Under the pieces are notes generated by a model that did no database searches, had not been told where the DNA came from, and worked only from the letters and a program-made list of their open reading frames with translations. Positions 12,895 through 53,814 of a stretch of DNA of 64,000 nucleotides are shown one piece after another. This DNA comes from Macrostomum lignano (taxonomy: Eukaryota). The DNA is taken from NCBI GenBank assembly GCA_002269645.1, contig NIVC01003909.1:1-64000 (forward strand), in the 5' to 3' direction. The position numbers and the translations under genes are program-made. The first letter of the stretch is position 1. Each line of letters opens with the position of its first letter.

Positions 12895-13286
12895 TTGCAG
12901 CAGCCGTGACGTATCCCGCTTTGATGCCGACTCTCGCCAGCAGAGCTCGACCTTCATCCCATCGTTGGCAACACTAAGCAGCGTTGGCGCTCCGGCAGCT
13001 GCTCAGCTACCAGCGTCTCAAGACCCGGCAGCCTGGTGGCAGGCCGAGCTCGGCTCCCCAGCTCGAGTCGACTTCGTCACACTGTGGAATCGAGCCGACT
13101 GCTGCCCGGAGAGGCTGGCGAACTTCCAGCTGCTGATGGACGGAGTTCAGTGCGCCAGCTACTCCACAGAGACTCCCGAGTCCGTCTTCAATGTGAGCTG
13201 CGGCCTCACTGGCAGAGTGCTGCGGGTTCAGACCCGGACTGGATCCGTCCTGACCATCTGCGAGATTCGATTCTTCCAGCTGATGG
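12895..13286 (+). pseudogene. F-type lectin (fucolectin/FTP domain) copy 1, decayed
   Basis: The 3' half is nearly identical to copies 2 and 3 (WWQAELG...NRADCCPERL...LTICEI). The 5' half has a deletion and a +1 insertion (tcaagacccg versus tcagacccg) that breaks the frame. No intact signal-peptide exon was found. Confidence 0.75.
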
Positions 13287-13984
13287 GTGAGTCGCGCTAG
13301 TTGCAGATTATCAAGCTTTTCATTTTAACTTTGAATAAGAAACACGGTGATCATTAAACAAAGAATCTCAGCTGTTCAATTCTCTTTAAGAAACTGGTTA
13401 AAACACAGCTGAGTCCACCAGCTTAAATCGCACAAATCGAAGGTATAGCAGTGACGTCACCTGTGTACTCCTGGTGTTCGCCTAAAAGACTACTTAAGCC
13501 ACTCCCTGCGAACTCAGACTGATGGTGAGTTTATGGAGGTTCATCTGCTTGCATTTCATTTGGCTCCAGAACCTCTTGACGGGTAAGGTTCAGGTGAGCA
13601 GTCGTTTTGGGTGCTGTTAGAAGTGCATCAAAGCTTTCATGTACGTCAGCATGACATGCATGCCAGCAGCTTATGTATTTTAGCATATTCATAGGTGTAT
13701 TAATTCTGATTTACTATTCTTTATCGACACGATAATAGTTATTAATGTGAGTCTTGAACTTTTTTAATTCGTGCAGTGATTAGGCTTCACCTTCCAAAGA
13801 CAACTTGTTATTAGAATGGCGTAAATTCATCAGTCACTGGAAAATACTTTTTACTTGTCACTCTATTTGAGTCCATGACACTCATTTTGACACTTATTTT
13901 GAGTAGATCAAACTAATTTTCTGAAAGCGATTGTATCCCACAATCGTATCGTCTGTGGCTGACAAAAATTAGGTCGTAAAATAA

Positions 13985-15768
13985 TGGATTCACGATTTCA
14001 CATGATTACATGATTTTAATCACGATTTTATATGAACACATGATTTCAATCACGATTTCACATGATTACATGATTTTAATCACGATTTTATATGAACACA
14101 TGATTTCAATCACGATTTCACATGATTACATGATTTCAATCACGATTTTACATGATTACATGATTTTAATCACGATTTTACATATGATTACATGATTTTA
14201 TTCACGATTTTACATGATTGCATGATTTTAATCACGATTTCACATATGATTACATGATTTTAATCACGATTTTAAATGATTACACGATTTTAATCACGAT
14301 TTTACATGATTACATGATTTTAATCACGATTTTAAATGATTACACGATTTTAATCATGATTTCACATGATTACATGATTTTAATCACGATTTTACATGAT
14401 TGCATGATTTTAATCACGATTTCACATATGATTACATGATTTTAATCATGATTTTACATGATTACATGATTTTAATCACGATTTCACATATGATTACATG
14501 ATTTTAATCACGATTTTACATATGATTACATGATTTTAATCACGATTTCACATATGATTACATGATTTTATTCACGATTTTACATGATTGCATGATTTTA
14601 ATCACGATTTCACATATAATTACATGATTTTAATCACGATTTTAAATGATTGCACGATTTTAATCATGATTTCACATGATTACATGATTTTAAACACGAT
14701 TTTAAATGATTAGACGATTTTAATCACGATTTTACATGATTACATAATTTTAATCACGATTTCACATATGATTACATGATTTTAATCACGATTTTACATA
14801 TGATTACATGATTTTAATCACGATTTCACATATGATTACATGATTTTATTCACGATTTTACATGATTGCATGATTTTAATCACGATTTTACATGATTGCC
14901 TGATTTTAATCACGATTTCACATTTGATTACACGATTTTAATCACGATTTTACATGAATACATTATTTTAATCACGATTTTACATTATTACATGATTTTA
15001 ATCACGATTTTACAATATTACATAATTTTAATCACGATTTTGACATGATTACATGATTTTATTCACGATTTCACATATGATTACATGATTTTAATCACGA
15101 TTTTACATGATTACATGATTTTAATCACGATTTTTGAATGATTACACGATTTTACTCACGATTTTAAATGATTACATGATTCTAATCATGATTTCACATG
15201 ATTACATGATTTTAATCACGATTTCACATGATTACATGATTTTAATCACGATTTTGACATGATTACATGATTTTAATCACGATTATAAATGATTACATGA
15301 TTTTAATCACGATTTTACATTATTACATGATTTTAATCACGATTTTACATTATTACCCGATTTTAATCATGATTTCACATGATAACACGATTTTAATCAC
15401 GATTTCACATGATTACATGATTTTAATGACGATTTCACATGAATACATTATTTTAATCACGATTTTAAATGATTACATGATTTTAATCACGATTTTACAT
15501 GATTACATGATTTTAATCACGATTTTACATGATTACATGATTTTAATCACGATTTCACATATGAAAACATGATTTTATTCACGATTTCACACATGATTAC
15601 ATGATTTTAATCACGATTTTACATTATAACATGATTTTAATCACGATTTTACATGATTACATGATTTTAATCACGATTTCACATTATTACATGATTTTAA
15701 TCACGATTTTAAATGATTACACGACTTTAATCACGATTTTACATGATTACATGATTTTAATCACGATT
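13985..15768. repeat. 30-bp AT-rich satellite (catgattacatgattttaatcacgatttta), about 1.8 kb
   Basis: About 58 tandem copies with 32-bp variants; source of the (HDYMILITIL)n ORFs. Confidence 0.95.
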
Positions 15769-15824
15769 TGGTATCATTGCTGAAAGTATTCGGTTGCTAC
15801 TCATGGGTAGCAAAGCGAACTTCA

Positions 15825-16022: not shown

Positions 16023-16922
16023 ATGAAGTTTACATTGATTGCTTTAATACTACCAGCTGTTTGGTGAGTGCCACAGGTGTGCGATCTGTGCATGCCAACT
16101 GTTTGCTGAGATATAAAATCTGCATTAGTAGGGTTGTTCTGGCCGCTTTTCATGGGGTTTATTCACGTAGTAACAAATTTAAAAGTGGTACAGGTTGCAA
16201 CTTCTGGTGACAGTCAGACAACTGCTGGTTAGGCTATTTCCTATTTAGGCACGTCATTCGGCTGCCCCCTGAGCACCCATACTTACAATTCCTTCGTGCA
16301 CAGGCGCAAATTTTGCATCTTTCATGTACATACTCTGTTTTTTATCTCAGTTATCCGTTTGTCTTTATCAAAGCAATTCTGTGCGTCAAACGTCATGTGG
16401 CCAAAGCGACGCGGGTTCGAATCTGTGACCTTTTGTTTCCGAGATCTCAAATGCAAACCCTGCCAGTCAGAAGAAGCCAATTGTCAATTGTCGATTTCAG
16501 GCCGCAACTGATGACGCAGCCAGTTGTGCAGCCGCTGATGCCAGACTCCTGCCAGCAGAGCTCTGAACATTCGCTTGTCGCCCCCTGCGGCAGGGCCATC
16601 GACGGCAGCACAGCGCAGTACTGGGGCTCCGGCAGCTGCTCAGCTACCAACAGGTCAGACCCGGCAGCCTGGTGGCAGGCCGAGTTCGGCTCCCCAGCTC
16701 GAGTCGACTTCGTCACCCTGTGGAATCGAGCCGACTGCTGCCCGGAGAGGCTGGCGAACTTCCAGCTGCTGATGGACGGAGTTCAGTGCGCCAGCTACTT
16801 CACGGAGACTCCCGAGTCCGTCTTCAATGTGAGCTGCGGTCTCAGCGGCAGGGTGCTGCGGGTTCAGACCCGGACTGGATCGGTCCTGACCATCTGCGAG
16901 ATTCGCTTCTTCCAGCTGATGG
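16023..16922 (+). CDS. Secreted F-type lectin (fucolectin/FTP domain) copy 2
   Basis: Exon 16023-16063 (MKFTLIALILPAV, GT donor) splices in phase 2 to exon 16501-16922 (W-PQLMTQ...CGRAIDG...CSAT...WWQAEF...NRADCCPERL...LTICEI). A GTGAG donor follows; the 3' exon(s) are unresolved. Confidence 0.85.
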
Positions 16923-17835
16923 GTGAGCTCACAGTGATTCAGTTTGCTTCGGAAATTCTCAAGCATCGAAAACTTTCAAGGAGATGTGGATATCAGGTAG
17001 GAGTTTGGGTAAGATGTCAGCATGTACTTTATTCTTTCATTATATATTTGATTCGCTTGTCATAACTGTTGTAATGCGGTTTCTTTTGTGTTTGACTTGA
17101 ATTTGCGCTGGTACAAGTATGTTGGCTATGGCTATGGCTATGGCTATGGCTATGACTACTAGCATTTCGTTCTGCCTTCTTACTTACTTCATTATTTTTA
17201 TTGGGTTCGCAAATTTTTATTCCCACTTACGATGGTTTTTGTTCTGTATATCTGCCATAGGCAACTCAATTATGCTGCATTGTGCGTGCCCGTCAGTGGA
17301 GTCAGCAGCTCAAATGCTTCTTTCTCAGTCTCCCCTAGTGGCTGCTACACTTGTAGTTCCGGTCTAAGGGCAGATCGGCAAGTGAATTCGGTCTGTCAAA
17401 CACTGTTTTTTGTCTTGACTTTGATCTGTTTCTCTCACTTTTATGAGGATCATTGCTTTTGTTTTTTACCACTGTCTGCGTTAGCCTACGATACTCTACA
17501 TCCTCCGCGTGCTGATGGGTGCAGATCAGAAGTGTAGGACTTTGAGTCCTCTCTCACAGTCTAGCAATTCCCTATCCTCTATATCCCTCCACCCCACGGC
17601 GCTGTGTCTATTTAGGTGAATGCCGCGTACAATCTCGGTTGCAATTGACGAGTAAAATACAAAGAGACTACCGCGACACTGTAGAAAATATAAATTTGCA
17701 TAGCCTTCTAGTAAGCTTTCTAAGTAGTACGCTCGTACGCGTGAAATTTACGAGAATTCTCAATTCTCTGCATTAATAAGTATGAGACATAAGAACATGC
17801 TCATGAGTTTAGGAACGGGGATAGGCTAGGGCACC

Positions 17836-18980: not shown

Positions 18981-19999
18981 CAGGCATTGTGACGCTCTGC
19001 CAATGCGATACTGCTACTGACAGGCATTGTGACGCTCTGCCAATGCGATACTGCTACTGACAGGCATTGTGACGCTCTGCCAATGCGATACTGCTACTGA
19101 CAGGCATTGTGACGCTCTGCCAATGCGATACTGCTACTGACAGGCGTTGTGACGCTCTGCCAATGCGATACTGCTACTGGCAGGCATTGTGACGCTCTGC
19201 CAATGCGATACTGCTACTGGCAGGCATTGTGACGCTCTGCCAATGCGATACTGCTACTGGCAGGCATTGTGACGCTCTGCCAATGCGATACTGCTACTGA
19301 CAGGCATTGTGACGCTCTGCCAATGCGATACTGCTACTGACAGGCATTGTGACGCTCTGCCAATGCGATACTGCTACTGACAGGCATTGTGACGCTCTGC
19401 CAATGCGATACTGCTACTGACAGGCGTTGTGACGCTCTGCCAATGCTATACTGCTACTGGCAGGCATTGTGACGCTCTGCCAATGCGATACTGCTACTGG
19501 CAGGCATTGTGACGCTCTGCCAATGCGATACTGCTACTGACAGGCATTGTGACGCTCTGCCAATGCGATACTGCTACTGACAGGCATTGTGACGCTCTGC
19601 CAATGCGATACTGCTACTGACAGGCATTGTGACGCTCTGCCAATGCTATACTGCTACTGACAGGCATTGTGACGCTCTGCCAATGCGATACTGCTACTGA
19701 CAGGCATTGTGACGCTCTGCCAATGCGATACTGCTACTGACAGGCATTGTGACGCTCTGCCAATGCTATACTGCTACTGACAGGCATTGTGACGCTCTGC
19801 CAATGCGATACTGCTACTGACAGGCATTGTGACGCTCTGCCAATGCGATACTGCTACTGACAGGCGTTGTGACGCTCTGCCAATGCTATACTGCTACTGA
19901 CAGGCATTGTGACGCTCTGCCAATGCTATACTGCTACTGACAGGCATTGTGACGCTCTGCCAATGCGATACTGCTACTGACAGGCATTGTGACGCTCTG
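18981..19999. repeat. 40-bp satellite (caggcattgtgacgctctgccaatgcgatactgctactga)
   Basis: About 25 highly homogeneous copies with few substitutions. Confidence 0.97.
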
Positions 20000-22714: not shown

Positions 22715-23778
22715 ATGAATTCAATGTTGATAGCCCTATTATTCGCGGCTGTTTGGTGAGTTCCGAAGGAGTGCGGGCCAGAGTTGCTTGCTGAGTTGTA
22801 GCCGTGCGTCGATGGTGGAATATCAAGCATCCTCGTTTTCACAGAGCCCTCAGGATGCACATAAACTCCATAAAAAGCGTCATCTCGAAAATGCGTTATG
22901 TCAAACATAGATGAAACATCATGTCAAACATAGATGAAACATCATGTCAAACATAGATGAAACATCATGTCAAACATAGATGAAACATCATGTCAAACAT
23001 AGATGAAACATCATGTCAAACATAGATGAAACATCATGTCAAACATAGATGAAACATCATGTCAAACATAGATGAAACATCATGTCAAACATAGATGAAA
23101 CATCATGTCAAACATAAATGAAACATCATGTCAAACATAAATGAAGCACCATGTCAAGCATAAAAGCGTCATGTCGAAAAGAAGCGTCATGTCCAGCAAA
23201 AGATTCTTTTGAGAAATTGTTGAGAAGTCAAAGCTTTCGGGGGGGGTTGCTGAGATGTAGTTTGTTCATAAGCTTATATTCAATTCTTTGTTGCAGGGGG
23301 GGGGGGGGAGGGCGCTGCTTGCTAGTACTAGCTAAAAACACAAATTTCTCATATTTCAGGATGCAGCCGATGACCCAGGCTCCCGTGAGGCTGCTGACGC
23401 CTGTCTCCTGCAATCAGAGTTCCACCTTTCACTTCACCAGCTGCGACAGGGCCATCGACGGCAGCACAGCGCAGTACTGGAACTCTGACAGCTGCTCAGC
23501 TACCAACAGCTCAGACACGGCAGCCTGGTGGCAGGCCGAGCTCGGCTCCCCAGCTCGAGTCGACTTCGTCACCCTGTGGAATCGAGCCGACTGCTGCCCG
23601 GAGAGGCTGGCGAACTTCCAGCTGCTGATGGATGGAGTTCAGTGCGCCAGCTACTCCACAGAGACTCCCGAGTCCGTCTTCAATGTGAGCTGCGGTCTCA
23701 GCGGCAGGGTGCTGCGGGTTCAGACCCTGACAGGAGTGGTCCTGACCATCTGCGAGATTCGCTTCTTCCAGCTGATGG
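22715..23778 (+). CDS. Secreted F-type lectin (fucolectin/FTP domain) copy 3
   Basis: Exon 22715-22755 (MNSMLIALLFAAV) splices in phase 2 to exon 23360-23778 (W-MQPMTQ...CDRAIDG...CSAT...WWQAELG...NRADCCPERL...LTICEI). A GTGAG donor follows; read-through would stop after MGERS. Confidence 0.85.
22898..23160. repeat. 23-bp intronic minisatellite (atgtcaaacatagatgaaacatc)
   Basis: About 11 near-perfect copies inside intron 1 of lectin copy 3. Confidence 0.95.
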
Positions 23779-25565
23779 GTGAGCGCTCTTAGTGGTTTCA
23801 TTTCGCTTCAGAAATTCCCAAGATGATGTGGCTATCAGGTAGAGCTAAGGTAAGATTTCATAATTCTTGATATTTTTTAATAAGTTGGCTGGTTTGTCAG
23901 AACTGCTGTATCAGTAAGTGCGCCGCTTATTCCGTGTTTGATTTGAATTTGCATTTGCTGTTCAAGCAATATGGCTCTGACCAATGGCTACTGCTACTGC
24001 TCCTACTGACTCCGTTGCTGGGCTCAGTGCTGCGTACATTTACAGAATATAATTGAGACGCTCATAAAATGCTGCGAGAAAATTGACAACTTATCGATGT
24101 CAAGCAAGTGTGGGAAAGGTAGCATCTGGCAGTGCATGATTACAGTGCAAGCCTTGTGTCAGGGTGCTGCACCAGAGACAGATTCCACTGGATAATTTAT
24201 GTTTTTTGCCAAGTCAATCAAGATCACGAGAATGTTTTGATTGGAATTCTTGATTTGAATCGGGCTTAGATGCAGCTCTACTCCTGCAAGTCTATATACT
24301 AGTTTTGCGCTGTTTTTCTGTCTGTCATTGATTTTTTGACAACCGTCCTGCCGATTTTCTTAAAATTAGCTTTAAAAAACAATTTTTTTAATATATTAGA
24401 AAAACGATGTTTAGTAAAGCTTTCGTGTTTTTTGCTAAGGTCAAGCAGTTCGTACACTCGAAGGTTGATAAGCCAATTGTTAAAAATAGTCGACTTTAAA
24501 TACATGAAGATCTCTGAAATTTGTGCGTGAGGTTTGCCACAGCGCATACATGCTAGACGATTCAATGGTCCTCGGCCCAGTAAGCAAAGAAAAACTGTGA
24601 ATTGGGTCATTAGATTTGACTTTTGCTGTCTTGTGAGACCTGGTGCAACGTACAACGCCCTCATACGAACTTCACACGCTCTCACAGGTTGTAATGCAGC
24701 CCAGATCTTGTTATTAACATAGGCATGCACACTCGATCTGTGCCTTGGGGCTTGGCCCCCTTATGGCCGCCAATCGCCCGGCCAATTTCCGTGCCCACCA
24801 GCCCCAAATGAATGTCGCCGCAAACCGAATCGAAACTGACGGTTGTGACGCGAGAGTCACACGCGTTTATCGCTGAGTTGCTTGGTTCCAACCTTGAGTG
24901 TGGCTTCTCAAAGTCCCACCGCCCTCCATAGCTCACATCCGACTTCTATTCTCTCTCACACCAGGGGTTGTGCCAGAAGTTCCGTTTCTTCTGCTCCAAT
25001 ATTGACACCAAGGATGTCGCATTCAGACTTACGCACGTACGAGGCATTGCTAGACATTCTGACTTTAATTTCAACAGAAGCCCTCTTTGGGCTGCCTCGA
25101 AGTCGCTTTGACGCTCCTGCAGTTCCGAAGCTCACTTAGTCACGACTTCCGACTAAATTACGGCTATGTTTCTACCGTTTCTAGCACCGTGGAAAGCGAG
25201 AGACAGACTGCTCTTCAGCTCTCTCAGGGAGTTTAATTAATCTAAAATATGACATTCGAAAAAACATTCGTTATATAATAACAATAGAAGCATTAAGCTG
25301 AGCTTTAGATGGAGGACAGCCATCCTGAAATATTAAACCATCTGTTCTGAGCAGTTCAAATTCTGTGAAACAACTAAAAGGCGCCTGAAACAACACCAGC
25401 TGCGAACATCTCAACTGTCTGGAATGTGAACTCACTGAAAAGGTCCGGAACAATATCAGGACAGGCTTCCCCGTTCAAGTCAACTTTGTCAGCCCTTCAT
25501 CAGTGGATTAAAACTTAGTGGATTAAATCAGTGGATTATACATGTAATAATAATTGATGATCAGA

Positions 25566-25823
25566 TTGGCAACCGACAGCTCAGCCGCAGCTATTGCGTG
25601 CCGCATCTGAAGGCTGCGTACGGCTGTTCGGTCCAAGGACTGGGGGGTCGCCACACACCCTCTCAATTACCCCAGCTAATGCTGGCACCCATTTTACAGC
25701 TGCGTGGACTGAAGCAATGCAGAGTTAAGTGTCTTGTTTAAGGACACAAATTGTTCCGAATAGGTCGAGAATCGAACTCCCGACCTTTCAGTCGCGAGTC
25801 CGACGCTCTGACCACTGGGCTAC
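25566..25823 (-). mobile_element. tRNA-derived SINE
   Basis: tRNA-like head with A box (GTAGCCCAGTGGTCAGAGC) and B box (GGGAGTTCGATTCTC), then a CORE-like block (CCTTAAACAAGACACTT...CCACGCAGCTGTAAAATGGGTGCCAGC). Homologous to 48819-49098. Confidence 0.8.
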
Positions 25824-25925
25824 AACCCCTTCAATCGGCGATGATTGATCGAAAGTTATTACAAGAGACTAAAAGAAATGCCGTGAAAGTCGAGAAGATA
25901 CTGTCGAGGGCTTCATATAAAAAGT

Positions 25926-25931
25926 TTTATT
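25926..25931 (-). terminator. Polyadenylation signal of the candidate peptide gene
   Basis: AATAAA, overlapping ATTAAA, on the minus strand downstream of the TGA at 26014-26016. Confidence 0.6.
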
Positions 25932-26013
25932 TAATGGCAGCATGAAGAAGCTGCTGTAAACGCAGCGGGGAGTTTCATCCAGAAGCCAATAGTCTCTATC
26001 GATTCGACAACCT

Positions 26014-26250
26014 TCAGCCGCGGAAGAAGCGAAACCTCCACCTCCTCCTGCGCCAGCGGACGAACCATTTCTGCTGGGCGGCGAGCTCCTCCTCGAGCTC
26101 CGAGCTGCTCGGCTCCTCCAGGTCGGCCAGCGGCCCGTCGGCCTCATCATCGTCCGGTCGCTCGGCCTCGCCGTTGGCGCCCGCCGGCAGCAGCGCCAGC
26201 AGCAGCAAAGCCGAGGCAGTCAGCATTGCGAGACAAAACCGGAGCTTCAT
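26014..26250 (-). CDS. Candidate cationic antimicrobial peptide precursor (signal peptide + acidic propiece + Arg/Trp/Phe-rich peptide + amidation Gly), 78 aa
   Basis: MKLRFCLAMLTASALLLLALLPAGANG-EAERPDDDEADGPLADLEEPSSSELEEELAAQQ-KWFVRWRRRRWRFRFFRG*. GC3-rich codons like the other host exons. TATAAATA about 60 nt upstream and AATAAA about 83 nt downstream of the stop. Confidence 0.8.
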   Translation of the reverse strand: MKLRFCLAMLTASALLLLALLPAGANGEAERPDDDEADGPLADLEEPSSSELEEELAAQQKWFVRWRRRRWRFRFFRG

Positions 26251-26309
26251 TGTGACTCGTGTAGTGCAGCTGGTTGCGATCTCCAACACTCGAGCTGTTC
26301 ACGCCAGCT

Positions 26310-26317
26310 TATTTATA
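26310..26317 (-). promoter_or_regulatory. TATA box of the candidate peptide gene
   Basis: TATAAATA on the minus strand, 60 nt 5' of the ATG at 26250. Confidence 0.65.
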
Positions 26318-26814
26318 GATATACGCCCGATCCGCTCCGCACATTGCCTTTGCCAAGGTCGGAAACACGTGAGAGACGGCTTGAGAAGAAGCCCTCGAGC
26401 CTCTTACTGTTCGGTTTAATTTATCAAATTAATTTCGCGAGAAAATAAGTTTCATTGCACACGAATACGAGTACTGCGACATCAACAGTGTGAGTCTGGG
26501 AAATTCTCTGCTTTCATTTAGCCTTGGCAGTGATGCAGTGTTGGCAGTGGGAGTCCTGCCAGGCCCCAGACAAGCCCTTTGTCTCCGAGACAAAATGCTA
26601 AATCTAGTTTTCTACCTTGCACACAGCAGTTGTAATAAATTTACCTGAGAACAAACTAATTCCGACTGAGAACGAGTACCCACACCAGCACAATGAGCAC
26701 CTTTTATCTTGGTTCTCATTCAGTTTAGTAGACTCAAAGAATAAGATATTCAATTAGGCACGCTTGCTAAAATTAGCAAAAAAATTGCCATTTAAATCGG
26801 TTAAAACTTGCGGC

Positions 26815-28224
26815 CCCGATCTCTAACAGGCCGCTAGTTCACTGAGTGTCTAACACATTCACAGCTCCGATCTCTAACAGGCCGCAAGTTCACTGAGTGT
26901 CTAACACATTCACAGCCCCGATCTCTAACAGGCCGCTAGTTCACGGAGTGTCTAACACATTAACAGCTCCGATCTCTAACAGGCCGCTAGTTCACTGAGT
27001 GTCTAACACATTCAGAGCTCCGATCTCTAACAGTTCACACTGAGTGTCTAACACATTCACAGCTCCGATCTCTAACAGGCCGCAAGTTCACTGAGTGTCT
27101 AACACATTCACAGCCCCGATCTCTAACAGGCCGCTAGTTCACGGAGTGTCTAACACATTAACAGCTCCGATCTCTTACAGGCCGCTAGTTCACGGAGTGT
27201 CTAACACATTCAGAGCTCCGATCTCTAACAGTTCACACTGAGTGTCTAACACATTCACAGCTCCGATCTCTAACAGGCCGCAAGTTCACTGAGCGTCTAA
27301 CACATTCACAGCTCCGATCTCTAACAGGCTGCTAGTTCACTGAGTGTCTAACACATTCACAGCTCCGATCTCTAACAGGCCGCAAGTTCACTGAGCGTCT
27401 AACACATTCACAGCTCCGATCTCTAACAGGCCGCAAGTTCACTGAGCGTCTAACACATTCACAGCCCCGATCTCTAACAGGCCGCAAGTTCACTGAGCGT
27501 CTAACACATTAACAGCTCCGATCTCTAACAGGCCACTAGTTCACGGAGTGTCTAACACATTCAGAGCTCCGATCTCTAACAGTTCACACTGAGTGTCTAA
27601 CACATTCAGAGCTCCGATCTCTAACAGGCCGCAAGTTCACTGAGTGTCTAACACATTCACAGCTCCGATCTCTTACAGGCCGCTAGTTCACTGAGTGTCT
27701 AACACATTCAGAGCTCCGATCTCTAACAGTTCACACTGAGTGTCTAACACATTCAGAGCTCCGATCTCTAACAGTTCACTGAGTGTCTAACACATTCAGA
27801 GCTCCGATCTCTAACAGGCCGCAAGTTCACTGAGTGTCTAACACATTCACAGCTCCGATCTCTTACAGGCCGCTAGTTCACTGAGTGTCTAACACATTCA
27901 GAGCTCCGATCTCTAACAGTTCACTGAGTGTCTAACACATTCACAGCTCCGATCTCTTACAGGCCGCTAGTTCACGGAGTGTCTAACACATTCAGAGCTC
28001 CGATCTCTAACAGTTCACACTGAGTGTCTAACACATTCAGAGCTCCGATCTCTAACAGTTCACACTGAGTGTCTAACACATTCAGAGCTCCGATCTCTAA
28101 CAGTTCACTGAGTGTCTAACACATTCAGAGCTCCGATCTCTAACAGTTCACACTGAGTGTCTAACACATTCAGAGCTCCGATCTCTAACAGTTCACGGAG
28201 TGTCTAACACATTTACAGCTCCGA
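26815..28224. repeat. About 51-bp satellite with 43-45-bp deletion variants
   Basis: Unit ccgatctctaacaggccgctagttcactgagtgtctaacacattcacagct; short variants lacking ggccgcta become dominant towards the 3' end. Confidence 0.95.
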
Positions 28225-28799
28225 TAAAAATAAATTAATAATGGAAGATTCACAAGTATCCAATTTGAGATTCAGAAGCCGTTGGTATTAATTATATCCC
28301 TAGCTTTAACAAATTTAATTTGTAAAATGTGTTTTTAATTAAGCCTTTTCATTTTACACATTGCAGCACAAGATGAACTAATAATTGATCAATTAAGCAA
28401 TCGATTGAATTCGCCGTGCAATTAAAATGCATTAAATGCTACAAATCAGGGGAAAATTGGGATAAAAATCGAACTGATAAGAACGCGATCGGTGCAAGAT
28501 AAACACTGGTGTAAAGTGTGCAAAGTACACGAATAAACACCCGCATTTGGTGCACAACATTTTGCTAGCAATTTCCAATCGATACTTTAGCAAATAAAAG
28601 CAAAGAACAAAGTCGCTTTGACTAGAATGAACTGGAGTGGAATAACAACTGCATGTCTGCGGCTGGTGTTCAGCTGATACTACTGATATTTTGCTCACTT
28701 GTTAAGTAGTATAAGGAGGATATGTTGAAAAAATTGGCGTAAATAGCAGAAATTAAAATCTTTTTGTTGAAGTGAAAACCTTAAGTATCTATCATGCGA

Positions 28800-29346
28800 T
28801 TCTCAGTGACACACAGCATCTCAGTGAGACACACAGCATCTCAGTGAGACACACAGCATCTCAGTGAGACACACAGCATCTCAGTGAGACACACAGCATC
28901 TCAGTGAGACACACAGCATCTCAGTGAGACACACAGCATCTCAGTGAGACACACAGCATCTCAGTGAGACACACAGCATCTCAGTGAGACACAGCATCTC
29001 AGGGAGACACAGCATCTCAGTGAGACACACAGCATCTCAGGGACACACAGCATCTCAGTGAGACACAGCATCTCAGGGAGACACAGCATCTCAGTGAGAC
29101 ACACAGCATCTCAGTGAGACACACAGCATCTCAGTGAGACACACAGCATCTCAGTGAGACACAGAATCTCAGTGAGACACACAGCATCTCAGTGAGACAC
29201 ACAGCATCTCAGTGAGACACACAGCATCTCAGTGAGACACACAGCATCTCAGTGAGACACAGCATCTCAGTGAGACACAGCATCTCAGTGAGACACACAG
29301 CATCTCAGTGAGACACACAGCATCTCAGTGAGACACAGCATCTCAG
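28800..29346. repeat. 20-bp minisatellite (tctcagtgagacacacagca)
   Basis: About 27 copies with 18-bp variants, immediately 3' of the LARGE stop codon; each unit has the palindrome TCTCA-G-TGAGA. Confidence 0.95.
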
Positions 29347-29394: not shown

Positions 29395-32300
29395 CTAGGA
29401 CGATCCCACAGACCCACTCGCGTCCCTACGAAATGACAAATACTTGAGCGCGCGGACTCCATGCCTCTTAGCCAAGTACTTGATGTACTCCACCTTCAGC
29501 GTGTTGATGCAGTGTCGGTACTCCGGTATGAACCTGAACCTCGCCACGTCCAGACTCGGCGCGTGCGGCAGGTGCACGATGAAGGCATTGGGCAGCACTC
29601 GGAAAGCGAATCCCAGAATGTCCAGCTGCATGATGAAGGACACCTTGTTCCAGCCGAACCCCACGAATCTGGTGTCAAACCTGGCGGCGTCCCGGCCGAT
29701 GACCACGTAGGGCTCGAAGTCAGCCTGCCAGGTCACCGGGTACGACTGGGTGGCCGACTTCCACCGGGTGAAGTCCGTGGCCCGGTGGCCCTCCCGGAAC
29801 ACCTTGTAGGGTTGAGAGAGAACACAATGGGTGCACGAGAGACAAGACTGGTTAAGCACAGGGCCTCGGTCTGGGACTGGGGCCACGACATACTCGTAAT
29901 TCAAATAGGCGCCAGACGCTAACAAAGACACCAAAAACCAGCAAGGGCAACACGTCACATAAAAGTTGGCGCCAGGCAGTGGCGTCATATACTAACAGTG
30001 GCGCCAGACACTAACAATGGCGCCAGACACTAACAGTGGCGCCAGATAATATCAGTGGCGCCAGACACTAACAGTGGCGCCAGACACTAACAGTGGCGCC
30101 AGATAATATCAGTGGCGCCAGACACTAACAGTGGCGCCAGATAAAAAACCTAGTCGACAATAGCCGACATGTAGCGAAAAATACTTTATAAGGCAGGATT
30201 TGACACAGGCTGCCTAATCGGCCCACGCACTACTAACCTCCTGCCTGAAGGGAACAATCTCCCCCAGGTTGAGGCGGCTCAGCAACTCGGCCTTGCTGGC
30301 GGGGAATTGCAGCTTGTACTGGAATGTCTCGAATGCGGGCACAATCAGGGCCACCCTCTGCTGCCGTTGCTGGGCGGAGAATCTGGCAATCTCGGACCTG
30401 AGATGCTCGTAGAGCCCCAGACTGGGCAGGAAGTCGAAGTCCAGCAGGAACACAAAGTCGGTCACGGCGTTCTCCATGGCTACATTGCGGAGCCGGTTCA
30501 CAGGATAGAACTGGCCCTCCTTCATCAGCAGGTGGTAGGCAATGTTGCGGCGGTGACGCAGCACCTGGAAAGGTTGCGGATTGGGATCTCATTGGTTAGG
30601 GATGTGAGATCTCATTGGTTAGGGATGTGGATCTCATTGGTTAGGGATTTGGGATCTCATTGGTTAGGGATGTGGATCTCATTGATTAGGGATGTGAGAT
30701 CTCATTGGTTAGGGATGTGGGATCTCATTGGTTAGGGATGTGGATCTCATTGATTAGGGATGTGAGATCTCATTGGTTAGGGATGTGGGATCTCATTGGT
30801 TAGGGATGTGGGATCTCATTGGTTAGGGATGTGGGATCTCATTGGTTAGGGATGTGAGATCTCATTGGTTAGGGATTTGGGATCTCATTGGTTAGGGATG
30901 TGGGATCTCATTGGTTAGGGATGTGGGATCTCATTGGTTAGGGATGTGGGATCTCATTGGTTAGGGATGTGGGATCTCATTGGTTAGGGATGTGGATCTC
31001 ATTGATTAGGGATGTGAGATCTCATTGGTTAGGGATGTGGGATCTCATTGGTTAGGGATGTGGGGTCTCATTGATTAGAGATGTGGGATCTCATTGGTTA
31101 GGGATGTGATATCTCATTGGTTAGGGATGTGGGATCTCATTGGTTAGGGATGTGGGATCTCATTGGTTAGGGATGTGGGATCGCACAAACCTGAGAAGAC
31201 TCAACAAAGGTGGCCAACTGGTGGGCCTCAGCATCCGTGACGTAGATGCAAAGGCTGATGGGGCCGGCCCAGTGTCGCGACAGGCTCTCCAGCAGCTGTA
31301 CCCGATCCAGACTGAGCTGGCTGACCAGGGTGACATCGTGAGGCCCCTGGGCGGTGTAGTTGTACTCCAAGTAGTACAGGTGCGTCCTCCGGACCAGCCG
31401 CTGCTCCGCCCGCATCTCGTAGCACTCGTCCCCGGCGCTGACGCCAGCGGCAGCCGGGCCGGCGAGCGAGTTGGCACCGGAGGCGTCCTCTGCCAGCAGC
31501 TGGTCCTGGTCGTCCTCCGCGCCATCGTCCGGACAGGCGAACAGCCGCCTGCGCAACAGGCCGCCATCATAGTCCAAGTAGGTCATGTACAGCGTATGGA
31601 AGTGCTGCGCGAATCGATGCCTGCGGGCGCCCCAAACCTTCAGTGGCGAGTTCCAGTGCAGGATGCGAACGCTGGGCAGGTTGGCGGGGGAGCGGTAGCA
31701 CAGCTCCGGCTGGGTGTGGTCGCCGAGCTGCACGTTCCAGTAGCATGGGATTCGGTACAGCAGGCCCGGGTGCCGTCGCACCAGGGCGTTAATGACGTCC
31801 TGCGGGCGGGCGGAGTTGGTGCCGAGGGATTCCGGGATTCAGTCGCCAAAATCCCAAATAAAAGAAATATCCCAACTCTTTCTGTTATCACATTAAAGAT
31901 TTAAAATATCCCTAATCCTCAGTAACTATAAAATATCCCTAATCCTCGGTAACTATAAAATATCCCTAATCCTCGGTAACTATAAAATATCCCTAATTCT
32001 CCAGAAACTATAAAATATCCCTAATCCTCAGCAACTATAAAATATGCCTAATCCTCAGCAACTATAAAATATCCCTAATTCTCAGAAACTATAAAATATC
32101 CCAAATCCCCACCAACTATAAAATATCCCAAAACCCCACCAACTATAAAAATATCCCAAAACCCCACCAACTATAAAAACATCCTAAATCCCCACCAACT
32201 ATAAAATATCCCAAATCCCCATCAGGTGAAGCACCGCCACACCTGGTCAGCCAGCTGGGCGGGTCCGTGCTTGGCCGCGCACTCCCTGGCCACGGCAGGC

Positions 32301-33439
32301 CAGCGCCTGTCCCAGCCCCAGGCCCGCAGCCTGGCAAGGTGCATGAGCATCACCCCGGTGTTGAAGCCGCGCCCCAGAGCTGGCCAGACCCCGGCCTTGC
32401 CAGACAGGTACCAATCGGACAGGTTGTCCGCCAGCCCGATAGCGAGGCCGGGCCGCTCGGCCAGCTGGCCGAACAGCTGCCACAGCTGGAGGGGGTCGGC
32501 CGTCACCGCCACGTCAGTGTCCAGTACAATGACCCGCTCGAGAGACCGGGGCAGCACGGAGGGCAGCGTCAGCTTTAGCAGGCCGTACACGCCTGAGTAG
32601 TGCGTGTTGGACAGCCAGCTCACCTGCCGCAGAGGGGAGTTCAGGAATGCGGATATAAAAATTGGGACCGCTTTTTCGCTTTGGCATCCTGGTAATTGCA
32701 AAAAGGTACCGTATTAGTAAAATTATAAAGAGGCTCTGACAAGTTCTTATGGTGATTTCTAACATTCACAGGGAAATTCTAACATTAACAGGGGAATCCA
32801 ACCATTCACAGGGGAATTCTAACATTCATAAGGGAATTCTAACATTCCCAAGGAAATTATAGCATTCACAAGGGAATTCTGGCATTCACAGGGGAATCCT
32901 ACCATTCACAGTGGAATCCTACCATTCACAGTAAGGTTCAATCTCGGACACACCTACACAAAGAAACAGTACATTAGACCTACCTGATCAGTGGCTGTAT
33001 CATAATAATCCACTCTGAGGTGAGGAATTCTCCAAGTTCGAAACAAAGTCTTGAGCACCCGCTTTGCTCGGCCTGCAGTGACCAGATGCAGGTGGATGGG
33101 GGTTGACCGGTGAAACAGGACACTCTTGACCACCGTCACAGCGTAGCGAGTGGCGGTCTGGCCGCCAACAATGAGCGCCACATGGATGGCCTGGCAGTCC
33201 AGTTGCTGACGCCCTGGGGTCAAGCTGGGCCCAGCAGCCAGTGAAGCATTTGCGCCGGAGCCAGCCGCCGATGCCACCCCGAGGCTGCCCACGATTTCAC
33301 ACTGGCAATCTGGGCTGCTGCTGGCAGCTCTGCCGGCAGAGCCATCACGTGCGATGGACAGCAGGCAGAGCAGGGAGCAGCCAGCCAGCAGAGCTGACAA
33401 CAGGCGGCCACGGCGGCGTACAGAGAATGGCAATCTCAT
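29395..33439 (-). CDS. LARGE: LARGE-type bifunctional xylosyl-/glucuronyltransferase (GT8 + GT49), about 726 aa
   Basis: Five phase-0 GT-AG exons: 33439-32984, 32623-32243, 31799-31191, 30564-30238, 29802-29395. Type II TM anchor. Motifs IHVALIVGG, HYSGVYGLLKLTLP, VIVLDTD, GRGFNTGV, LADQDVIN, WNVQL, DVTLVSQLSLDR, YPVNRLRNVA, LDFDF, FEPYVV, GFGWNKVS and FIVHLPHAPS match vertebrate LARGE1/2. Confidence 0.95.
29970..30142. repeat. 19-bp minisatellite in LARGE intron 4
   Basis: Tandem ggcgccagacactaacagt / ggcgccagataatatcagt. Confidence 0.9.
30580..31180. repeat. 22-23-bp G-rich minisatellite filling LARGE intron 3
   Basis: Tandem gatctcattggttagggatgtgg, each unit containing TTAGGG. Confidence 0.95.
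31905..32220. repeat. 27-bp minisatellite in LARGE intron 2
   Basis: Tandem aactataaaatatccctaatcctcggt drifting to aactataaaatatcccaaaccccacc. Confidence 0.9.
32755..32932. repeat. 20-bp minisatellite in LARGE intron 1
   Basis: Degenerate tandem aacattcacaggggaattct. Confidence 0.85.
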
Positions 33440-35306
33440 GGCAATGCTGGCAGCTCCAGTGGCAATACTGGGGCATCTCACAGCACTGAGGCACGAGTTT
33501 CTTGCTGCAGTGTTTTGTCAATAAATTATCACAAAACAGGATTGTAAATAAATCTCAGAAAACCCTATGTTTTAAAAAAAAGTTATTATTTATATACCTC
33601 ATGGCAAAAAGCATGAGGCAAAAAGCAAAAAGCATGGTAAAGCACAAATATGAAGAATATAATGCATACAAAGTATCAAACTATATAGTTCATTTAAACT
33701 ATCATATGTCTCTAAGCCAAAGTGCAATAGGCCTAGAATGTGAGAGAGATATAACTAAAAAACAAGATATGAATAGTCATTGAATTTTAAAAAAATTATA
33801 TCAGCATACTATATTAAAAATTGTACCAATCATTGTTGTTTTAATAGTCTTCTAATAAGTAAATAATATTTAAGGTTTGCTCAACTATGCTAATACTTAA
33901 TAATAATATTCAACTTCAATTTCTTTCAATATTATTTAAATTGTATTTTTATCAGATACAGTATAGAGTTAGTTCTCAAATATTAAATGTTATTACTGAA
34001 ATTTTACTACTTTGTTACCTCTACATGTACCCCTACATGTGATGCATGTGTTAGGACTTAGGTGGATTGTGGATGTCTGTAGGTCTAAATTGAAATGTTA
34101 CAACATTGGTTTGTTAACTTCGTTAGCAAGTTTAAATAAACAGCAGACAGCTATATAAGAATTTTGAGACTGCTTGGTATATAGTAAAGATTTGGTATTT
34201 TACTAATTATAAGCTAATAAGTAAGAAGAATACTATTAGTAAGCATAACAAGTAAGAAATACTTAGACTTATTCTTAGACTTTTGCTTAGACATTATATA
34301 TAGAAATCAGTCAAAAATCAATAATTGGTCTATATTACATCTGTTAAAAATTTTATGATAGCTATAAGATAGGAAAGCTTTAGAGCCACTTTGGTAACAG
34401 CAGTAACACAAATATAACCATATAAGCAAATCTATGAAAAAATTAAATCATAAAATAGAGGCTATTAACTCTGTTAGCTACTATCTATAGCTATCAAGCC
34501 CCATTTTAATCAGTATGCCTTAGCTTCTTAGGTATAGGTAGGTATAGTATAGACCTAACACTAATACTGAGTACAAAAATTAAATGTATATAAGAATATG
34601 TTATTGAGCCCAAAAAATGAAAATAATTATGCTTTTGCATTGACAATCAATAAAAGTGTTAACTGTTAATACTGTTTAATGTGGACTTTATATATTAGAG
34701 CTATTTGCAATAATTAAATGTAATTACTGAAATTTTACTACTTTGTTACCCCTACATTTACCCCTACATGTGATGCATGTGTTAGGACTTAGGTGGATCG
34801 TGGATGTCTGTAGGTCTAAATTGAAATGTTACAACATTGGTTCGTTAACTTCGTTAGCAAGTTTACTAAGTAGGCGGTTGGCTCTACTAGGACTAGGTGT
34901 AAATTTATCTTTAAAGATTTTAACTTATCGAAATCAACTTCAGTGGATTACTGGATTAGTTCCCTAACCTAAATTATATATTTCTAAAAAAGATGTTGGC
35001 GATAACTTTGAAGAAATATTTAAGGTAAATAAACATACAAAAATAACACTACTTAAATCACTAAATTTAAGATGTTTTTATTAAAATTTATTCTGAGAAA
35101 TAAATATGTTCTAACTCGCCGGCGCACATTTTGGCAACAAAAGATTTTGTTATAAACCTGCTCATTTTTAATTATTGTATGTCAGGTTGCTGAGAGCTCT
35201 AAGGAGCGCTAATCCGCTACAACAAACAAAGCTTTTCGACCGTGAAGCAAATGAGCTGAGAAGATTGGACTTTGTTGTATCTTTGGGAATGAACAGAGAC
35301 TTGAAA

Positions 35307-38762: not shown

Positions 38763-41700
38763 TGAAACAACTTGACTTACGATGGCACTAGCCGAAAAAC
38801 CCTTGCGTGAAAACTCCAACTGCAGCGACTTATATATTTTGACACGATATTATAAAAGGGACTAAAAAGCGCGAAGTAGCAATTGTGTGAGTGTGAATGA
38901 GTACGTGACAGTTTACGCACAAACGAAAGTACAGAGAGGAGGTAAAATAGCCAGAGCAGCGCAACCCCAAAACACAAACCAACCCAGCCCCAAAATCCCA
39001 AACACACGACACCCGCCACACGCCACCACACCTCTCCCAACCAAGAGCGGAACCCAACTCAGTTACAGTTCAGTCTTTGTCTCAGCCTCAGCCTTTAGTC
39101 ACTTGTACATCAGCCGGTCGGGAGGTGCCCGGGTGCGTCCAGACCGGCGGAGCTCGGATTCCGCCGCGGGCTTCAACGGCGGTTTGGACTCGGCCATCGG
39201 CGCCGAACCGGCCTTCGGCACGGGCAGTTCTTGTGGCGTTGCCGTAGCGACCTCCGGTGACTCCGATGTGTCCGACATTGGATCGGCTGGACGTTCTCGC
39301 AGGTGATCCGCGTGTCGCCGGATATCTCGGCTGTCCGGCAGGCTGCACTCGTACCACAGTGCGTTCTCCTTCCGGGTGACGACCGCGGGAGACCAATTGG
39401 CCGCTTGTCCGAAGTTCCCAGCGTACACCGCTTCTCTCTCTTCAAAGAATCGAGGCTTTGCCGTCAAATCGTGATGAAGCTTCTGGCTTTCCTGACGCTC
39501 CAGGACCCGCCGGGAGATGCTGGGACGCGGGTGATCCAGTAATGACCGCAGGGTTTGCCCCATCAGAAGCTCACAAGGCGCTGCTCCCGTCGTTGAGTGC
39601 GGAGTGATCCGGTAGCTCATCAGGAAGCGGGCGACCTGCGTTTCGAGCGTGCCACCAGTCTGCTTTTCCAGCGAGCGCTTCAAACTTTGCACGGCCCTCT
39701 CAGCCAACCCGTTGGACGCAGGGTGGTACGGCGGGGTACGCACATGTCGAATGCCGTTTTGGCGACAGAGTTCGCCGAATTCACCGCTCACAAAGCAGGG
39801 CCCATTGTCCGTCACCACGACTTCTGGCAGGCCATGCGTACAGAAGCTCTGCCGCAGCTTCTCTGCTGTTGTCGCCGCTGTCGCCGACGATGTCACGTGG
39901 ACGTCAAGCCACTTCGAGTAGGCGTCCACGACGACTAGCAGCATCTTGCCACGAACAGGCCCTGCATAGTCGACATGAATCCGCGTCCACAGTTGCGTAG
40001 GCAGAGGCCAGGGCTGCAGCAGTACCGGAGATGCTTCCCGTTGATTTTGCTGACATTTAGAACAAGACGCCACCATCAACTCGATTTCCTGATCAATGCC
40101 TGGCCACCAAACATAGCTTCGGGGCAGCGACTTCATACGAGAAGAACCCGGATGACTCTGGTGGAGACACTGAAGCAACTGAACGCGACCTGCGGGTGGA
40201 ATAATGATGCGGCTATCCTAGAACAGGCAGCCATCTGCACAGAGAGTTTCTTGGATCGGCGACTGTATTGCAACAGCTCCGGTGGCGCGGTCTCCAGCCA
40301 ACCAGTAAGGCAGAAGCGAACGACCTGCGACATCAGGGGATCCCGCCGTGTCCAAATGCAGATGTCCTTGGAACTGACGGGACCAGAATCCAGACTGTCC
40401 ATTAGCAGGACGATCTCCGCGGGCACTGGGGTCGGTCGGTCCGCAGTCGGCGCTGGAAGACGACTAAAAGCATCCGCTCTGAGAAGCGAAGAGCCGCTGC
40501 GATGCACCAGCTTGTACCGATATGCTGACAGCAGCAGTGTCCATCGCTGCACTCGGCCAGATGCCAACGGCGGGATTTGCTTGCCTTCACCAAGAAGCCT
40601 AAGAAGAGGTCGATGATCCGTTAACAGACTGAACTCGCGGCCTAGGAGGTACTGGTTGAACTTCTTGACGCCGTAAACCAGCGCGAGCGCCTCCTTCTCC
40701 AGCTGACAATAGTTCCGCTCGGCCGAACTCAGGGTACTTGACGCATAGGCAACCGGCTTGTCCAGACCGCCGACCCGATGAAAGATTACGGCTCCAATTC
40801 CGTGATCCGAAGCGTCGCACTCCAAGAACAGCTCCGCTGCTGCATCATAGTGAGCCAGGACGTTCGGTTGGACAAGAAGACGCTTGCAGGTCTCGAAAGC
40901 CTTCTTTTGCGACTGTCCCTAGTGCCATCGGATCTCCTTGTTGAGCAGCTGGTGTAGCGGACTCAAGACAGTCGACAAGTTAGGCAGAAACTTCCCATAG
41001 TAACTCACGAGACCCAGGAAACTCCGCAGCTGCGTCAGGTCCATAGGCTCAGGTGCGTCCACTATGGCTTGGAGCTTGTCCTTCAGTGGATGAAGGCCTT
41101 CCGAGTCGATGCGGTGTCCCAGGTACACCACTGAATCCTGCATGAACGCGCACTTCTCACGGCTGTAGGTCAAGCCAGCGTCCTTAAAAACGGAGAGCAC
41201 CGCCCTGAGGTTGCTGCAGTGGCTCTCATCGTCCTGGCCAGTGACGATGACATCGTCCATAAATGCCGCGCAGTGAGCAATGCCTTGTAGCAGGCCGTCC
41301 ATGACTCTCTGGAACATGCTCGGCGCTGTCGATACACCAAATGGAAGCCTCGAGTACCGAAGAAGCCCCAACGGCGTGTTCACCGTGCAGAGCTCCTGAG
41401 CTGCAGCATCGAGGGGCATCTGAGAGAAGGCCTGACTCAGGTCCAGCTTGGTAAACTTCTTACCTCCGGCGAGTCTCGAGAACAATTCGTCAATGTTCGG
41501 CAGCGGGTACGTATCCGAATTAATAGAAACGTTGACGGTCTGTTTAAAATGGGCGCATACCCCGAATGCTGCCATCCGATTTCATTACAGGAACGATCGG
41601 CGACGCCCATTCTGAGAACTCCCTGCTGCACCTCCTTGTTCGCTTTTGCTCGACTTTGGCCTTCAGCGAGAACGGAATCGGGCGAGCCTTGCAGAACCGA

Positions 41701-43264
41701 GGCTTGGCGTCCGGCTTCAGCTGTATCGACAGTGGGGTGCCTTTGAATGTACCAAGATCACCAAACACCTCAGCGAATTCTTCCAGTAGTCCTTGCACTT
41801 GGGTACAAATTGTGGACTTCAGCTGTTTGATGGACTGCCAGTCGAGTTGCAGCTGCCGCAACCAGTCGCGGCCGAGCAGACTTGGGCCGCTGCCCTCCAC
41901 GACGAGCAGGGGAAGGCGGATGGACTCTTCTGAAAGCGACTTGCTGACAGGCAAATCCAACTTACCGAGCACATTAACGGAGTGTCCGGAGTATGTGGTT
42001 AGCTGAGCAGAAGAGCAGTTGATGGGCTTAACTTGGGGCCGCTGTGGAGGACATCCTTGTAGGTGCGCACCGATATCAGCGACACGGAAGCTCCAGTGTC
42101 CACCTCCATCAGACACGGGCGACCGTCAATGAAAACAGTTGTGATGATCGGGGGCACAGTTTCTCTGCGTGTGGTGCCGGAACCAAATTGGTGCAGAGAG
42201 TACGGCTCGTCTTGATCCTTCTCGATGGTTGTCGCCTCAAAAACTTGGTTGGCCGCCTACTGAGGCCGATTTCTGCAAGCCCTGGCCGCGTGTCCATTTT
42301 TCTGGCACCGGAAACACTGCTTGTCGATGAACGGACACTTTTGGGACATGTGCCTTGTCGACAGGCACCTGCCGCATCGCCTCTGATCTGGTGCTTGCTG
42401 AACTTTGAGAACTGCATCCTCCGTCTTGCTGCTCTCGCTGATCCCAGTGGCTGATTCCAAGACTTTGCAGTTCTTTGTTGCCGACTCATGGGCCTGAGCA
42501 ATTTCAGTGGCGGATTTTAGATTCAACTCGGGCTCCGCCAACAATCGCCGCTGGATCTCCAGATTGTTGATGCCGCACACCAGTCGATCTCGCAACATCT
42601 CGTCCAGATTGCTGTAGTTGCAGTGCTCACTCAGCTTCCGCAGCTCCGCCAGATATGTTGATACGGACTCGTCAGGCTTACTGACGCGGTTGTTGAAGTC
42701 GAAGCGCTGAACGATCTCTGATGGCGTAGGACAGTGATACTCTTTGAGAAGCTTGCAGATATACTCGTATGAATAGCTCTTGTCTCCGACTTTGGCTGGC
42801 GAGCAAAGGTTGCGAGCAATTTGAAAAGACTGGCGGCCGCAAACGCTTAGCAGGACGGCTCTTTTCTTTGCATCTTCTCTGATGCCATGCGCTTCAAAGT
42901 ACTGCTCCAGTCGCTCCTGGTATTCCGTCCAGGACTCTTCTCTGTCATTAAAGTTCTCAAACGCGTGGGTAGACGTACACTGACATCTCGTCGCCCGTGA
43001 AACAACTTGACTTACGATGGCACTAGCCGAAAAACCCTTGCATGAAAACTCCAACTGCAGCGACTTATATATTTTGACACGATATTATAAAAGGGACTAA
43101 AAAACGCAAAGTAGCAATTGTGTGAGTGTGAATGAGTATGCGACGGTGTACGCACAAACGAAAGTACAGAGAGGAGGTAAAATAGCCACAGAATCGCAAC
43201 CCCAAAACACAAACCAACCCAGCCCCAACACTCCAAACACACGACACCGCCACACGCCACCACA
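38763..43264 (-). mobile_element. Decayed full-length Ty3/gypsy LTR retrotransposon
   Basis: LTRs at 38763-39030 and 42998-43264 (TG...CA, roughly 5% diverged by eye). PBS-like GGGCGACGAG and PPT GGTTGGGAGAGG. Gag (ESWTEYQERL, CFRCQKNGHAARAC), PR remnant, RT (KLDLSQAF, FMDD), RH (ECDASDHG) and IN (HVDYAGP, TDNG, AER) are split by several frameshifts and an in-frame stop near 40919. Confidence 0.93.
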
Positions 43265-53761: not shown

Positions 53762-53814
53762 CCCTAACCCTAACCCTAACCCTAACCCTAACCCTAACCC
53801 CTAACCCTAACCCT
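53762..53814. repeat. Interstitial telomeric repeat (CCCTAA)n
   Basis: About 9 units of CCCTAA with two CCCCTAA variants. Confidence 0.9.

Follow-up and report, generated by a model that had tools for sequence, protein, structure and literature searches.

An orphan gene for a charge-polarised, Arg/Trp/Phe-rich and putatively secreted peptide precursor in the flatworm Macrostomum lignano

We describe a small gene on the minus strand of contig NIVC01003909.1 of the free-living flatworm Macrostomum lignano (assembly GCA_002269645.1; NIVC00000000 is the Mlig_3_7 assembly of this species). The window, i.e. the whole stretch of DNA that was analysed, is 64 kb long. The gene is very probably real and encodes a 78-residue protein with a predicted signal peptide, an acidic propiece and a strongly cationic, aromatic tail. 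Its structure, its annotation, the RNA-derived gene model, the constraint at the DNA level, its architecture and its orphan status are shown, as is that it is not a repeat, and it is best explained as a genuine, transcribed and lineage-restricted gene of M. lignano. The reading that we favour, with a probability of about 0.4, is that the product is a secreted, propiece-neutralised, C-terminally amidated and membrane-active host-defence or cytolytic peptide. The architecture, a cationic amidated peptide with an anionic propiece, is of a known kind and here without a family; it is not a new kind of system.

The gene consists of the following parts (CDS, coding sequence; UTR, untranslated region).

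26310-26317 (-): TATA box, TATAAATA, read in the sequence, with the transcript model starting 26-28 nt further downstream
26289-26291 (-): 5' end of the transcript model and probable transcription start, placed from the 5'-partial CDS and an in-frame TGA
26251-26288 (-): 5' UTR, without upstream ATG and with an A at position -3 of the start codon
26014-26250 (-): single-exon CDS, 78 codons and TGA (ATG at 26250, TGA at 26016-26014)
26170-26250 (-): predicted signal peptide, residues 1-27, MKLRFCLAMLTASALLLLALLPAGANG, with an alternative cleavage after A25, at 26176
26071-26169 (-): anionic propiece, residues 28-60, EAERPDDDEADGPLADLEEPSSSELEEELAAQQ, 14 D/E and 1 R, net charge -13
26020-26070 (-): cationic aromatic tail, residues 61-77, KWFVRWRRRRWRFRFFR, net charge +9
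26041-26052 (-): RRRR, residues 67-70, candidate furin/prohormone-convertase site within the tail
26014-26019 (-): C-terminal Gly78, candidate amide donor, and the TGA stop
25926-25931 (-): AATAAA polyadenylation signal, 82 nt past the stop and the sole one in the 3' region

The full translation of the open reading frame (ORF) is MKLRFCLAMLTASALLLLALLPAGANGEAERPDDDEADGPLADLEEPSSSELEEELAAQQKWFVRWRRRRWRFRFFRG. A preliminary description of the locus had placed the TATAAATA octamer, the ATG, the stop and the AATAAA on the minus strand; all these coordinates were re-read from the sequence and are correct, and the compact unit with a single-exon CDS, its own TATA promoter and poly(A) signal is upheld. 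A single exon follows from the annotation of two further contigs, where a gene span of 237 nt encodes the 78 residues. There is no ATG from the TATA box to position 26250, so the start codon is the first ATG. The TATAAATA octamer is enriched in the window (8 observed against 1.16 expected), and a further copy at 33587-33594 is located just upstream of the neighbouring LARGE-like gene. Because of the enrichment and of this copy, the octamer is suggested to be a commonly used core-promoter element in this region.

An exact-sequence look-up finds the 78-residue protein in both NCBI nr and UniRef, where the gene has the status of an unnamed, hypothetical protein. It is annotated on contigs NIVC01003697 (here L001) and NIVC01003350 (L002), while the window contig, NIVC01003909, carries a 91-residue 5'-partial form with V as its first residue (GTG at 26289). 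The expectation that so short a gene is easily missed by annotation was wrong, as the gene model is already in GenBank/UniProt on three contigs. According to the published description of the assembly, its GenBank annotation was made solely from RNA-seq transcript models (StringTie/TACO/TBONE, then TransDecoder), and novel transcripts with fewer than 0.5 reads per kilobase per million (RPKM) were dropped. The data sets behind the annotation include SRP082513 and SRR2682326. Since the gene models derive only from RNA-seq, the existence of this model most likely implies a transcript, and by this route the proposal of a real gene with a transcript is supported.

The 91-residue product was considered as a mechanical GTG-start call. 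This was dropped because the gene calls of the same contig are multi-exon eukaryotic models, including a multi-exon 510-residue protein with Glyco_transf_8 and Glyco_transf_49 domains, and the product is best read as a 5'-partial CDS. The partial ORF from 26289, together with an in-frame TGA at 26301-26299, upstream of the GTG, puts the 5' end of the model at 26289-26291. Counted from the first T of the TATA box this is the expected place for a TATA-directed start. The GC content of the ORF frame at the three codon positions is 0.68/0.49/0.87, a strong codon periodicity similar to that of the neighbouring glycosyltransferase exons (0.77-0.83 at the third position, GC3).

The signal peptide was assigned heuristically, from an n-region, a hydrophobic core and the -3/-1 rule. 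K2 and R4 make the n-region basic, the hydrophobic core reaches a Kyte-Doolittle score of 2.54 over its best 12 residues, and PAGANG makes up a c-region with small residues at -3 and -1. Under the -3/-1 rule the cleavage is ambiguous, either between AGA and NG after residue 25 or between ANG and EA after residue 27. The tail contains 8 R, 1 K, 3 W, 4 F and 1 V, no Cys and no Pro, and is followed by Gly and the stop. A recount of the spacer and the tail agrees with the composition given in the preliminary description, and its layout of signal peptide, anionic propiece, cationic aromatic tail and terminal Gly is supported.

This layout stands out in the window. R, K, W and F make up 89% of the last 18 residues, compared with at most 33% in every other ORF of the window. 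Among the 115 ORFs that start with ATG and are at least 60 residues long, a signal-like start, an acidic middle and a basic end are combined in this one only, and its charge segregation score is 22 versus 11 for the runner-up. None of 2,932 simulated ORFs, from 30 first-order Markov windows, has all three features, and the top segregation score among them is 9. The three-part architecture exceeds chance.

The helical hydrophobic moment of the tail is 0.06, under 98% of shuffles, and an amphipathic-helix mechanism was rejected on this value; at 160 degrees the moment is 0.76 (p about 0.05), which is mildly strand-like. The AlphaFold model, made without an alignment, has a predicted local distance difference test score (pLDDT) of 64.6, with helices at residues 3-20 and 49-76 and residues 21-48, of low to moderate confidence, without regular secondary structure. 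The model is too weak to inform on the precursor.

Over tens of kb, L001 and L002 are collinear with the window, and the three sequences are 94-97% identical. Redundancy from duplicated chromosomes is known for this assembly. Because of the collinearity over tens of kb, the three copies appear to be homeologues or haplotypes and not dispersed insertions. A three-way alignment has 49 variable columns out of 1,566, all of them outside one block:

25995-26478 (-): 484-nt block identical in the three copies, three-way alignment

The block contains the 161 nt that precede the TATA box, this box itself, the 5' UTR, the entire ORF and the first 19 nt of the 3' UTR, while in the flanks about 1 in 22 columns varies. 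The next longest invariant run is 175 nt, and a run as long as 484 nt was found in 0 of 20,000 random placements. The AATAAA is also unchanged across the three copies, whereas the 3' UTR differs at 25994-25946. The alignment thus provides evidence of constraint, or of gene conversion, on the promoter-plus-ORF unit. A palindromic E-box (CACGTG) and a single TGATAA (GATA-type) are also located in the invariant promoter block, at 26371 and 26426 (-); they are too short for interpretation. Directly upstream of the block there is a 51-bp minisatellite with 29 copies.

No relative of the protein was found. In a word-indexed search of 5.8 billion clustered proteins it matches only itself, and an exhaustive phmmer search of 1.84 billion representative proteins gives only the self-match. 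Pfam, at E-values up to 10, matches no family and hence neither a cathelin nor a transposable element domain. The cluster at 90% identity holds just the 78- and 91-residue forms. By orphan we mean that there is no detectable homologue among deposited proteins, with whole-genome DNA and other Macrostomum species outside the scope of the term. Two controls bear on the coverage of the databases: an exon of the LARGE-like gene gave no match above 69% identity, the species' own protein included, and an exact-sequence look-up of a DEG/ENaC-type ORF of the window found no record. In the searchable literature the peptide strings are absent, and there is no paper on a Macrostomum antimicrobial peptide (AMP).

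These searches bear out the earlier statement that the protein belongs to no recognisable family. They do not bear out the expectation of paralogues with a conserved signal and propiece and variable tails, as neither the annotated proteins nor the window, L001 and L002 contain any. A tblastn search of the window, L001 and L002 with the whole precursor, with the signal and propiece, and with the tail returned low-complexity noise only.

Just past the poly(A) site there is a tRNA-derived element that resembles a short interspersed nuclear element (SINE), at 25603-25830 (-), with A/B-box-like sequence; a second copy at 48840-49064 is 76% identical. The tRNA-like stretch at 25603-25809 was considered as a tRNA gene and rejected in favour of a degenerate SINE-type repeat. 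ARAGORN and Rfam scans of the window were negative, and the SINE-like element is not called by them.

According to the favoured reading, the TATA-box promoter would drive an mRNA of about 385 nt, from about 26290 to about 25905, whose single-exon CDS is translated into the 78-residue prepropeptide. The signal peptide would route the precursor into the secretory pathway, where the 33-residue propiece (-13) would neutralise the Arg/Trp/Phe-rich C-terminal segment (+9) in transit and storage. The terminal Gly would be converted to a C-terminal amide. Proteolysis would free either the 17-mer KWFVRWRRRRWRFRFFR-NH2 or, by cleavage at RRRR, WRFRFFR-NH2 and KWFVRW. The freed peptide would bind anionic surfaces and insert its aromatic side chains into membranes, and could thus act as a non-helical host-defence or cytolytic peptide, similar to indolicidin or to (RW)n peptides. 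From the precursor we infer that it is secreted, neutralised and amidated, where it is cleaved and that its product is antimicrobial or membrane-active, and the host-defence function is proposed because of composition and architecture only.

For the processing steps the machinery exists in the phylum, because flatworm PC2 and amidated peptides verified by mass spectrometry are known; amidation directed by Gly and carried out by PAM is documented in this way for flatworm peptides. Removal of the propiece in dipeptide steps, as in melittin, was rejected, since Ala or Pro is not found at every second position of the propiece. The consensus of furin and related convertases is R-X-K/R-R, and cleavage of the precursor at RRRR may be expected from its sequence.

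Several observations weigh against a host-defence peptide. RRRR, the sole strong convertase site, lies six residues inside the proposed mature peptide, and the junction of propiece and tail (LAAQQ-KWFV, between Q60 and K61) has no basic or other recognisable cleavage motif. The boundary of a mature 17-mer at this junction, proposed in the preliminary description, is therefore not backed by a protease motif. The antimicrobial or toxin function would follow purely from composition. To our knowledge nearly every Arg/Trp-rich peptide kills bacteria in vitro, and for this reason composition does not establish a physiological function. The ORF has no substitutions at all among the copies, so the ratio of nonsynonymous to synonymous substitution rates (dN/dS) is not computable and selection on the protein is not demonstrable; the constraint is at the DNA level only and holds equally for the promoter. 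AMP genes usually form clustered multigene families, and a singleton without a paralogue in the 64 kb, in L001 and L002 or in the protein databases appears to depart from this pattern.

The same processing signals can be read as those of a neuropeptide or peptide-hormone precursor, which we consider a serious though unlikely alternative. A convertase would cut at RRRR, a carboxypeptidase would trim the Arg residues and PAM would use Gly78, giving WRFRFFR-NH2. KWFVRW would then be the end of the spacer, the acidic region an ordinary spacer, and the heptapeptide would signal via a receptor or a peptide-gated channel. RRRR upstream and the Gly-stop downstream, the only canonical processing signals in the precursor, bracket WRFRFFR exactly. 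Flatworm prohormones are short, carry a signal peptide, are cut by PC2 at basic sites and are often amidated; moreover, lineage-specific neuropeptides are common and some neuropeptides are antibacterial too. The DEG/ENaC family has peptide-gated channels among its members, and a channel gene of this family is found at a distance of 29 kb, probably by coincidence. However, the 5.8-billion, phmmer and Pfam searches gave no similarity to any known neuropeptide family, and the C-terminus would be -FFRamide, unlike the -RFamide that is typical of flatworm FLP/NPF peptides. The nearly matching charges of -13 and +9 and the 89% R/K/W/F also suggest a biophysical role and not a receptor-specific one. 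It is improbable that the two blocks instead stay uncleaved as a secreted diblock polyampholyte of 49-51 residues. Such a molecule could pack densely or coacervate in secretory granules, mucus or rhabdites, or could be a polyanion-binding adhesive, release or seminal-fluid component. The junction without a cleavage motif and the nearly balanced opposite charges agree with such a product, Arg and aromatic residues are classic cation-pi "stickers" (the coacervation itself would be an extrapolation), and the single AlphaFold helix at 49-76 spans the junction with low to moderate confidence. On the other side, a precursor that passes through the secretory pathway would probably not keep its internal RRRR intact, there is no resemblance to known adhesive or seminal proteins, and the proposal is wholly speculative.

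The two other alternatives concern the ORF itself. It could be a young ORF, of de novo or frameshift origin, on a real transcript, with a peptide without a selected function and a charge polarity that is a by-product of purine- and GC-rich DNA in two frames. The protein is an orphan without a homologue in the protein searches and, as described above, protein-level selection is not demonstrable. On the minus strand AGGAGGAG is read in two frames, as EEE in the propiece (26086-26094) and as RRR in the tail (26041-26052); in frame +1 the acidic DNA becomes rich in Arg and Trp, and in frame +2 the tail DNA becomes acidic. Each of the two segments, acidic and basic, would carry the opposite type of charge if read in an alternative frame. 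This hints at an origin by frameshift or de novo, and the charge polarity could have arisen when GA/GC-rich DNA was shifted in frame. A product without function is nevertheless quite improbable, as a signal peptide, a first-ATG start in good context, a balanced propiece, the Gly-stop and the GC3 periodicity co-occur, the layout is absent from the 2,932 simulated ORFs, and the ORF is intact and, like the promoter, invariant in three copies with diverged flanks. That the ORF is part of a transposable element or repeat is extremely improbable. It is located between the 51-bp minisatellite (26816-28225) and the SINE-like element in a repeat-rich genome, and a match to a transposon had been named beforehand as a finding that would speak against the gene. 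However, within the window the unit 25810-26800 is single-copy and only the SINE-like piece recurs, Pfam finds no transposable element domain, and the three genomic copies are collinear.

Among the neighbouring features, a LARGE-like glycosyltransferase gene at about 29395-33481 (-) is the upstream neighbour on the same strand, with models of 212, 449 and 510 residues across the three copies. F5/8 type C exons follow the peptide gene directly on its downstream side and are on the other strand. The F5/8 type C / NedA-like galactose-binding (lectin-like) exon is present in three paralogous copies (16313-17065 (+), 23151-23792 (+) and 12959-13291), which are absent from the called genes of the homologous loci; their products could be secreted carbohydrate-binding proteins. 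The DEG/ENaC-type ORF at 54926-56449 (+) is apparently intronless and 487-507 residues long (Pfam ASC, E-value 1e-12), and its exact product is not on record.

Minisatellites are unusually dense in the window, with 45 rows in the TRF output, including 26816-28225, 28808-29346, 13990-15769 and 18981-19999. A 30-bp AT-rich array with 58 copies lowers the GC content to 26%, and the copy numbers of the minisatellites vary among the three genomic copies. Three remnants of long terminal repeat (LTR) retrotransposons are located at 6240-10318 (-), 39099-43054 (-) and 50511-52730 (+). One is a Ty3/gypsy element with long gag-protease-reverse transcriptase-RNaseH (956 residues) and integrase (423 residues) ORFs, another gypsy element is split over several ORFs, and the third has a 739-residue ORF containing DUF1759 (Bel/Pao-like gag). 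An interstitial telomere-type repeat (CCCTAA) with 8.7 copies is found at 53762-53814.

Receptors and signalling genes are named in reviews of planarian immunity, an endogenous gene-encoded antimicrobial peptide is not, and a 2026 paper calls the antibacterial effector mechanisms of flatworms incompletely defined. Flatworms withstand bacterial infection well; if the favoured reading is true, a validated Arg/Trp/Phe amidated peptide would be the phylum's first classical effector. As a taxon-restricted singleton that may have originated by frameshift or de novo, the gene would then also make a clean example, and the Trp/Arg peptide class would gain a natural scaffold of very small size. A neuropeptide would instead be a new -FFRamide peptide in flatworms. 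In its fullest form the proposal becomes doubtful: with this gene a classical cationic host-defence peptide would be known as a gene product in a free-living flatworm for the first time, from a singleton orphan whose acidic and basic halves come from the same purine-rich DNA in different frames, and whose amidated non-helical peptide controls epidermal or gut microbes and perhaps also signals, as in Hydra. In M. lignano RNA interference can be performed by soaking. Transgenesis is also established in the species, where upstream regions of up to 2 kb were enough for other genes, so cell type, regulation and loss of function are quickly testable.

Compared with AMP prepropeptides of the arminin, myticalin or amphibian type, the precursor has a heuristic signal peptide and segregated, roughly balancing charge blocks; it lacks a convertase site at the boundary of the pro and mature parts, and no multigene family is seen in the window, L001, L002 or the protein databases. 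As in Hydra arminins and other taxon-restricted AMPs, there is a signal peptide, a bipartite charge and no homologue outside the lineage. Hydra AMPs, in contrast, form clustered multigene families, many with Cys patterns, whereas the flatworm gene is a singleton per haploid locus with a Cys-free mature part and no sequence similarity to them. The myticalins, linear cationic AMPs of mussels, are made with a signal peptide and pair an Arg-rich cationic peptide with an anionic extension; their amidation is predicted to involve CPE and PAM. They share with the flatworm gene the taxon restriction and the predicted Gly-directed amidation. In myticalins, however, the cationic peptide precedes the anionic extension, which is C-terminal, a conserved Lys-Arg site separates the two, and the genes have introns and form a large, variable family; in the flatworm gene the anionic part comes first, and there is no junction site, a single-exon CDS and no paralogue.

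The planarian npp, spp and npy prohormones are also short signal-bearing precursors with basic-site cleavage and Gly-directed amidation. In Hydra the neuropeptides NDA-1, Hym-357 and RFamide III are antibacterial too, i.e. the categories of neuropeptide and AMP overlap. The flatworm gene has the signal peptide and a peptide bracketed by a basic site and Gly, as expected for a neuropeptide; unlike these prohormones and Hydra neuropeptides it fits no known neuropeptide family by homology, and its charge and aromatic content are extreme.

In composition the tail resembles indolicidin and tritrpticin, which are also short, linear, Cys-free, dominated by Arg and aromatic residues and without an amphipathic helix. 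The indolicidin precursor also ends in Gly. Indolicidin itself, ILPWKWPWWPWRR-NH2, is C-terminally amidated. These two peptides are mammalian, Pro-rich and made with a conserved cathelin prodomain, while the flatworm gene has no cathelin domain or homology, a Pro-free tail with more Phe and a higher charge (+9), and a short acidic propiece. Trp/Arg-rich peptides are active down to hexapeptides, with cation-pi-assisted membrane binding and insertion and an extended, non-helical structure, and the tail is consistent with this class because it has almost no helical amphipathicity. WRFRFFR-NH2 and KWFVRW have the length class and the alternation of R and aromatic residues of Combi-1 (Ac-RRWWRF-NH2), the lactoferricin core (RRWQWR-NH2) and KCM21 (KWWWRW-NH2), and hexapeptides of this type are antimicrobial. 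Those three are laboratory or fragment peptides, whereas the flatworm candidate is gene-encoded.

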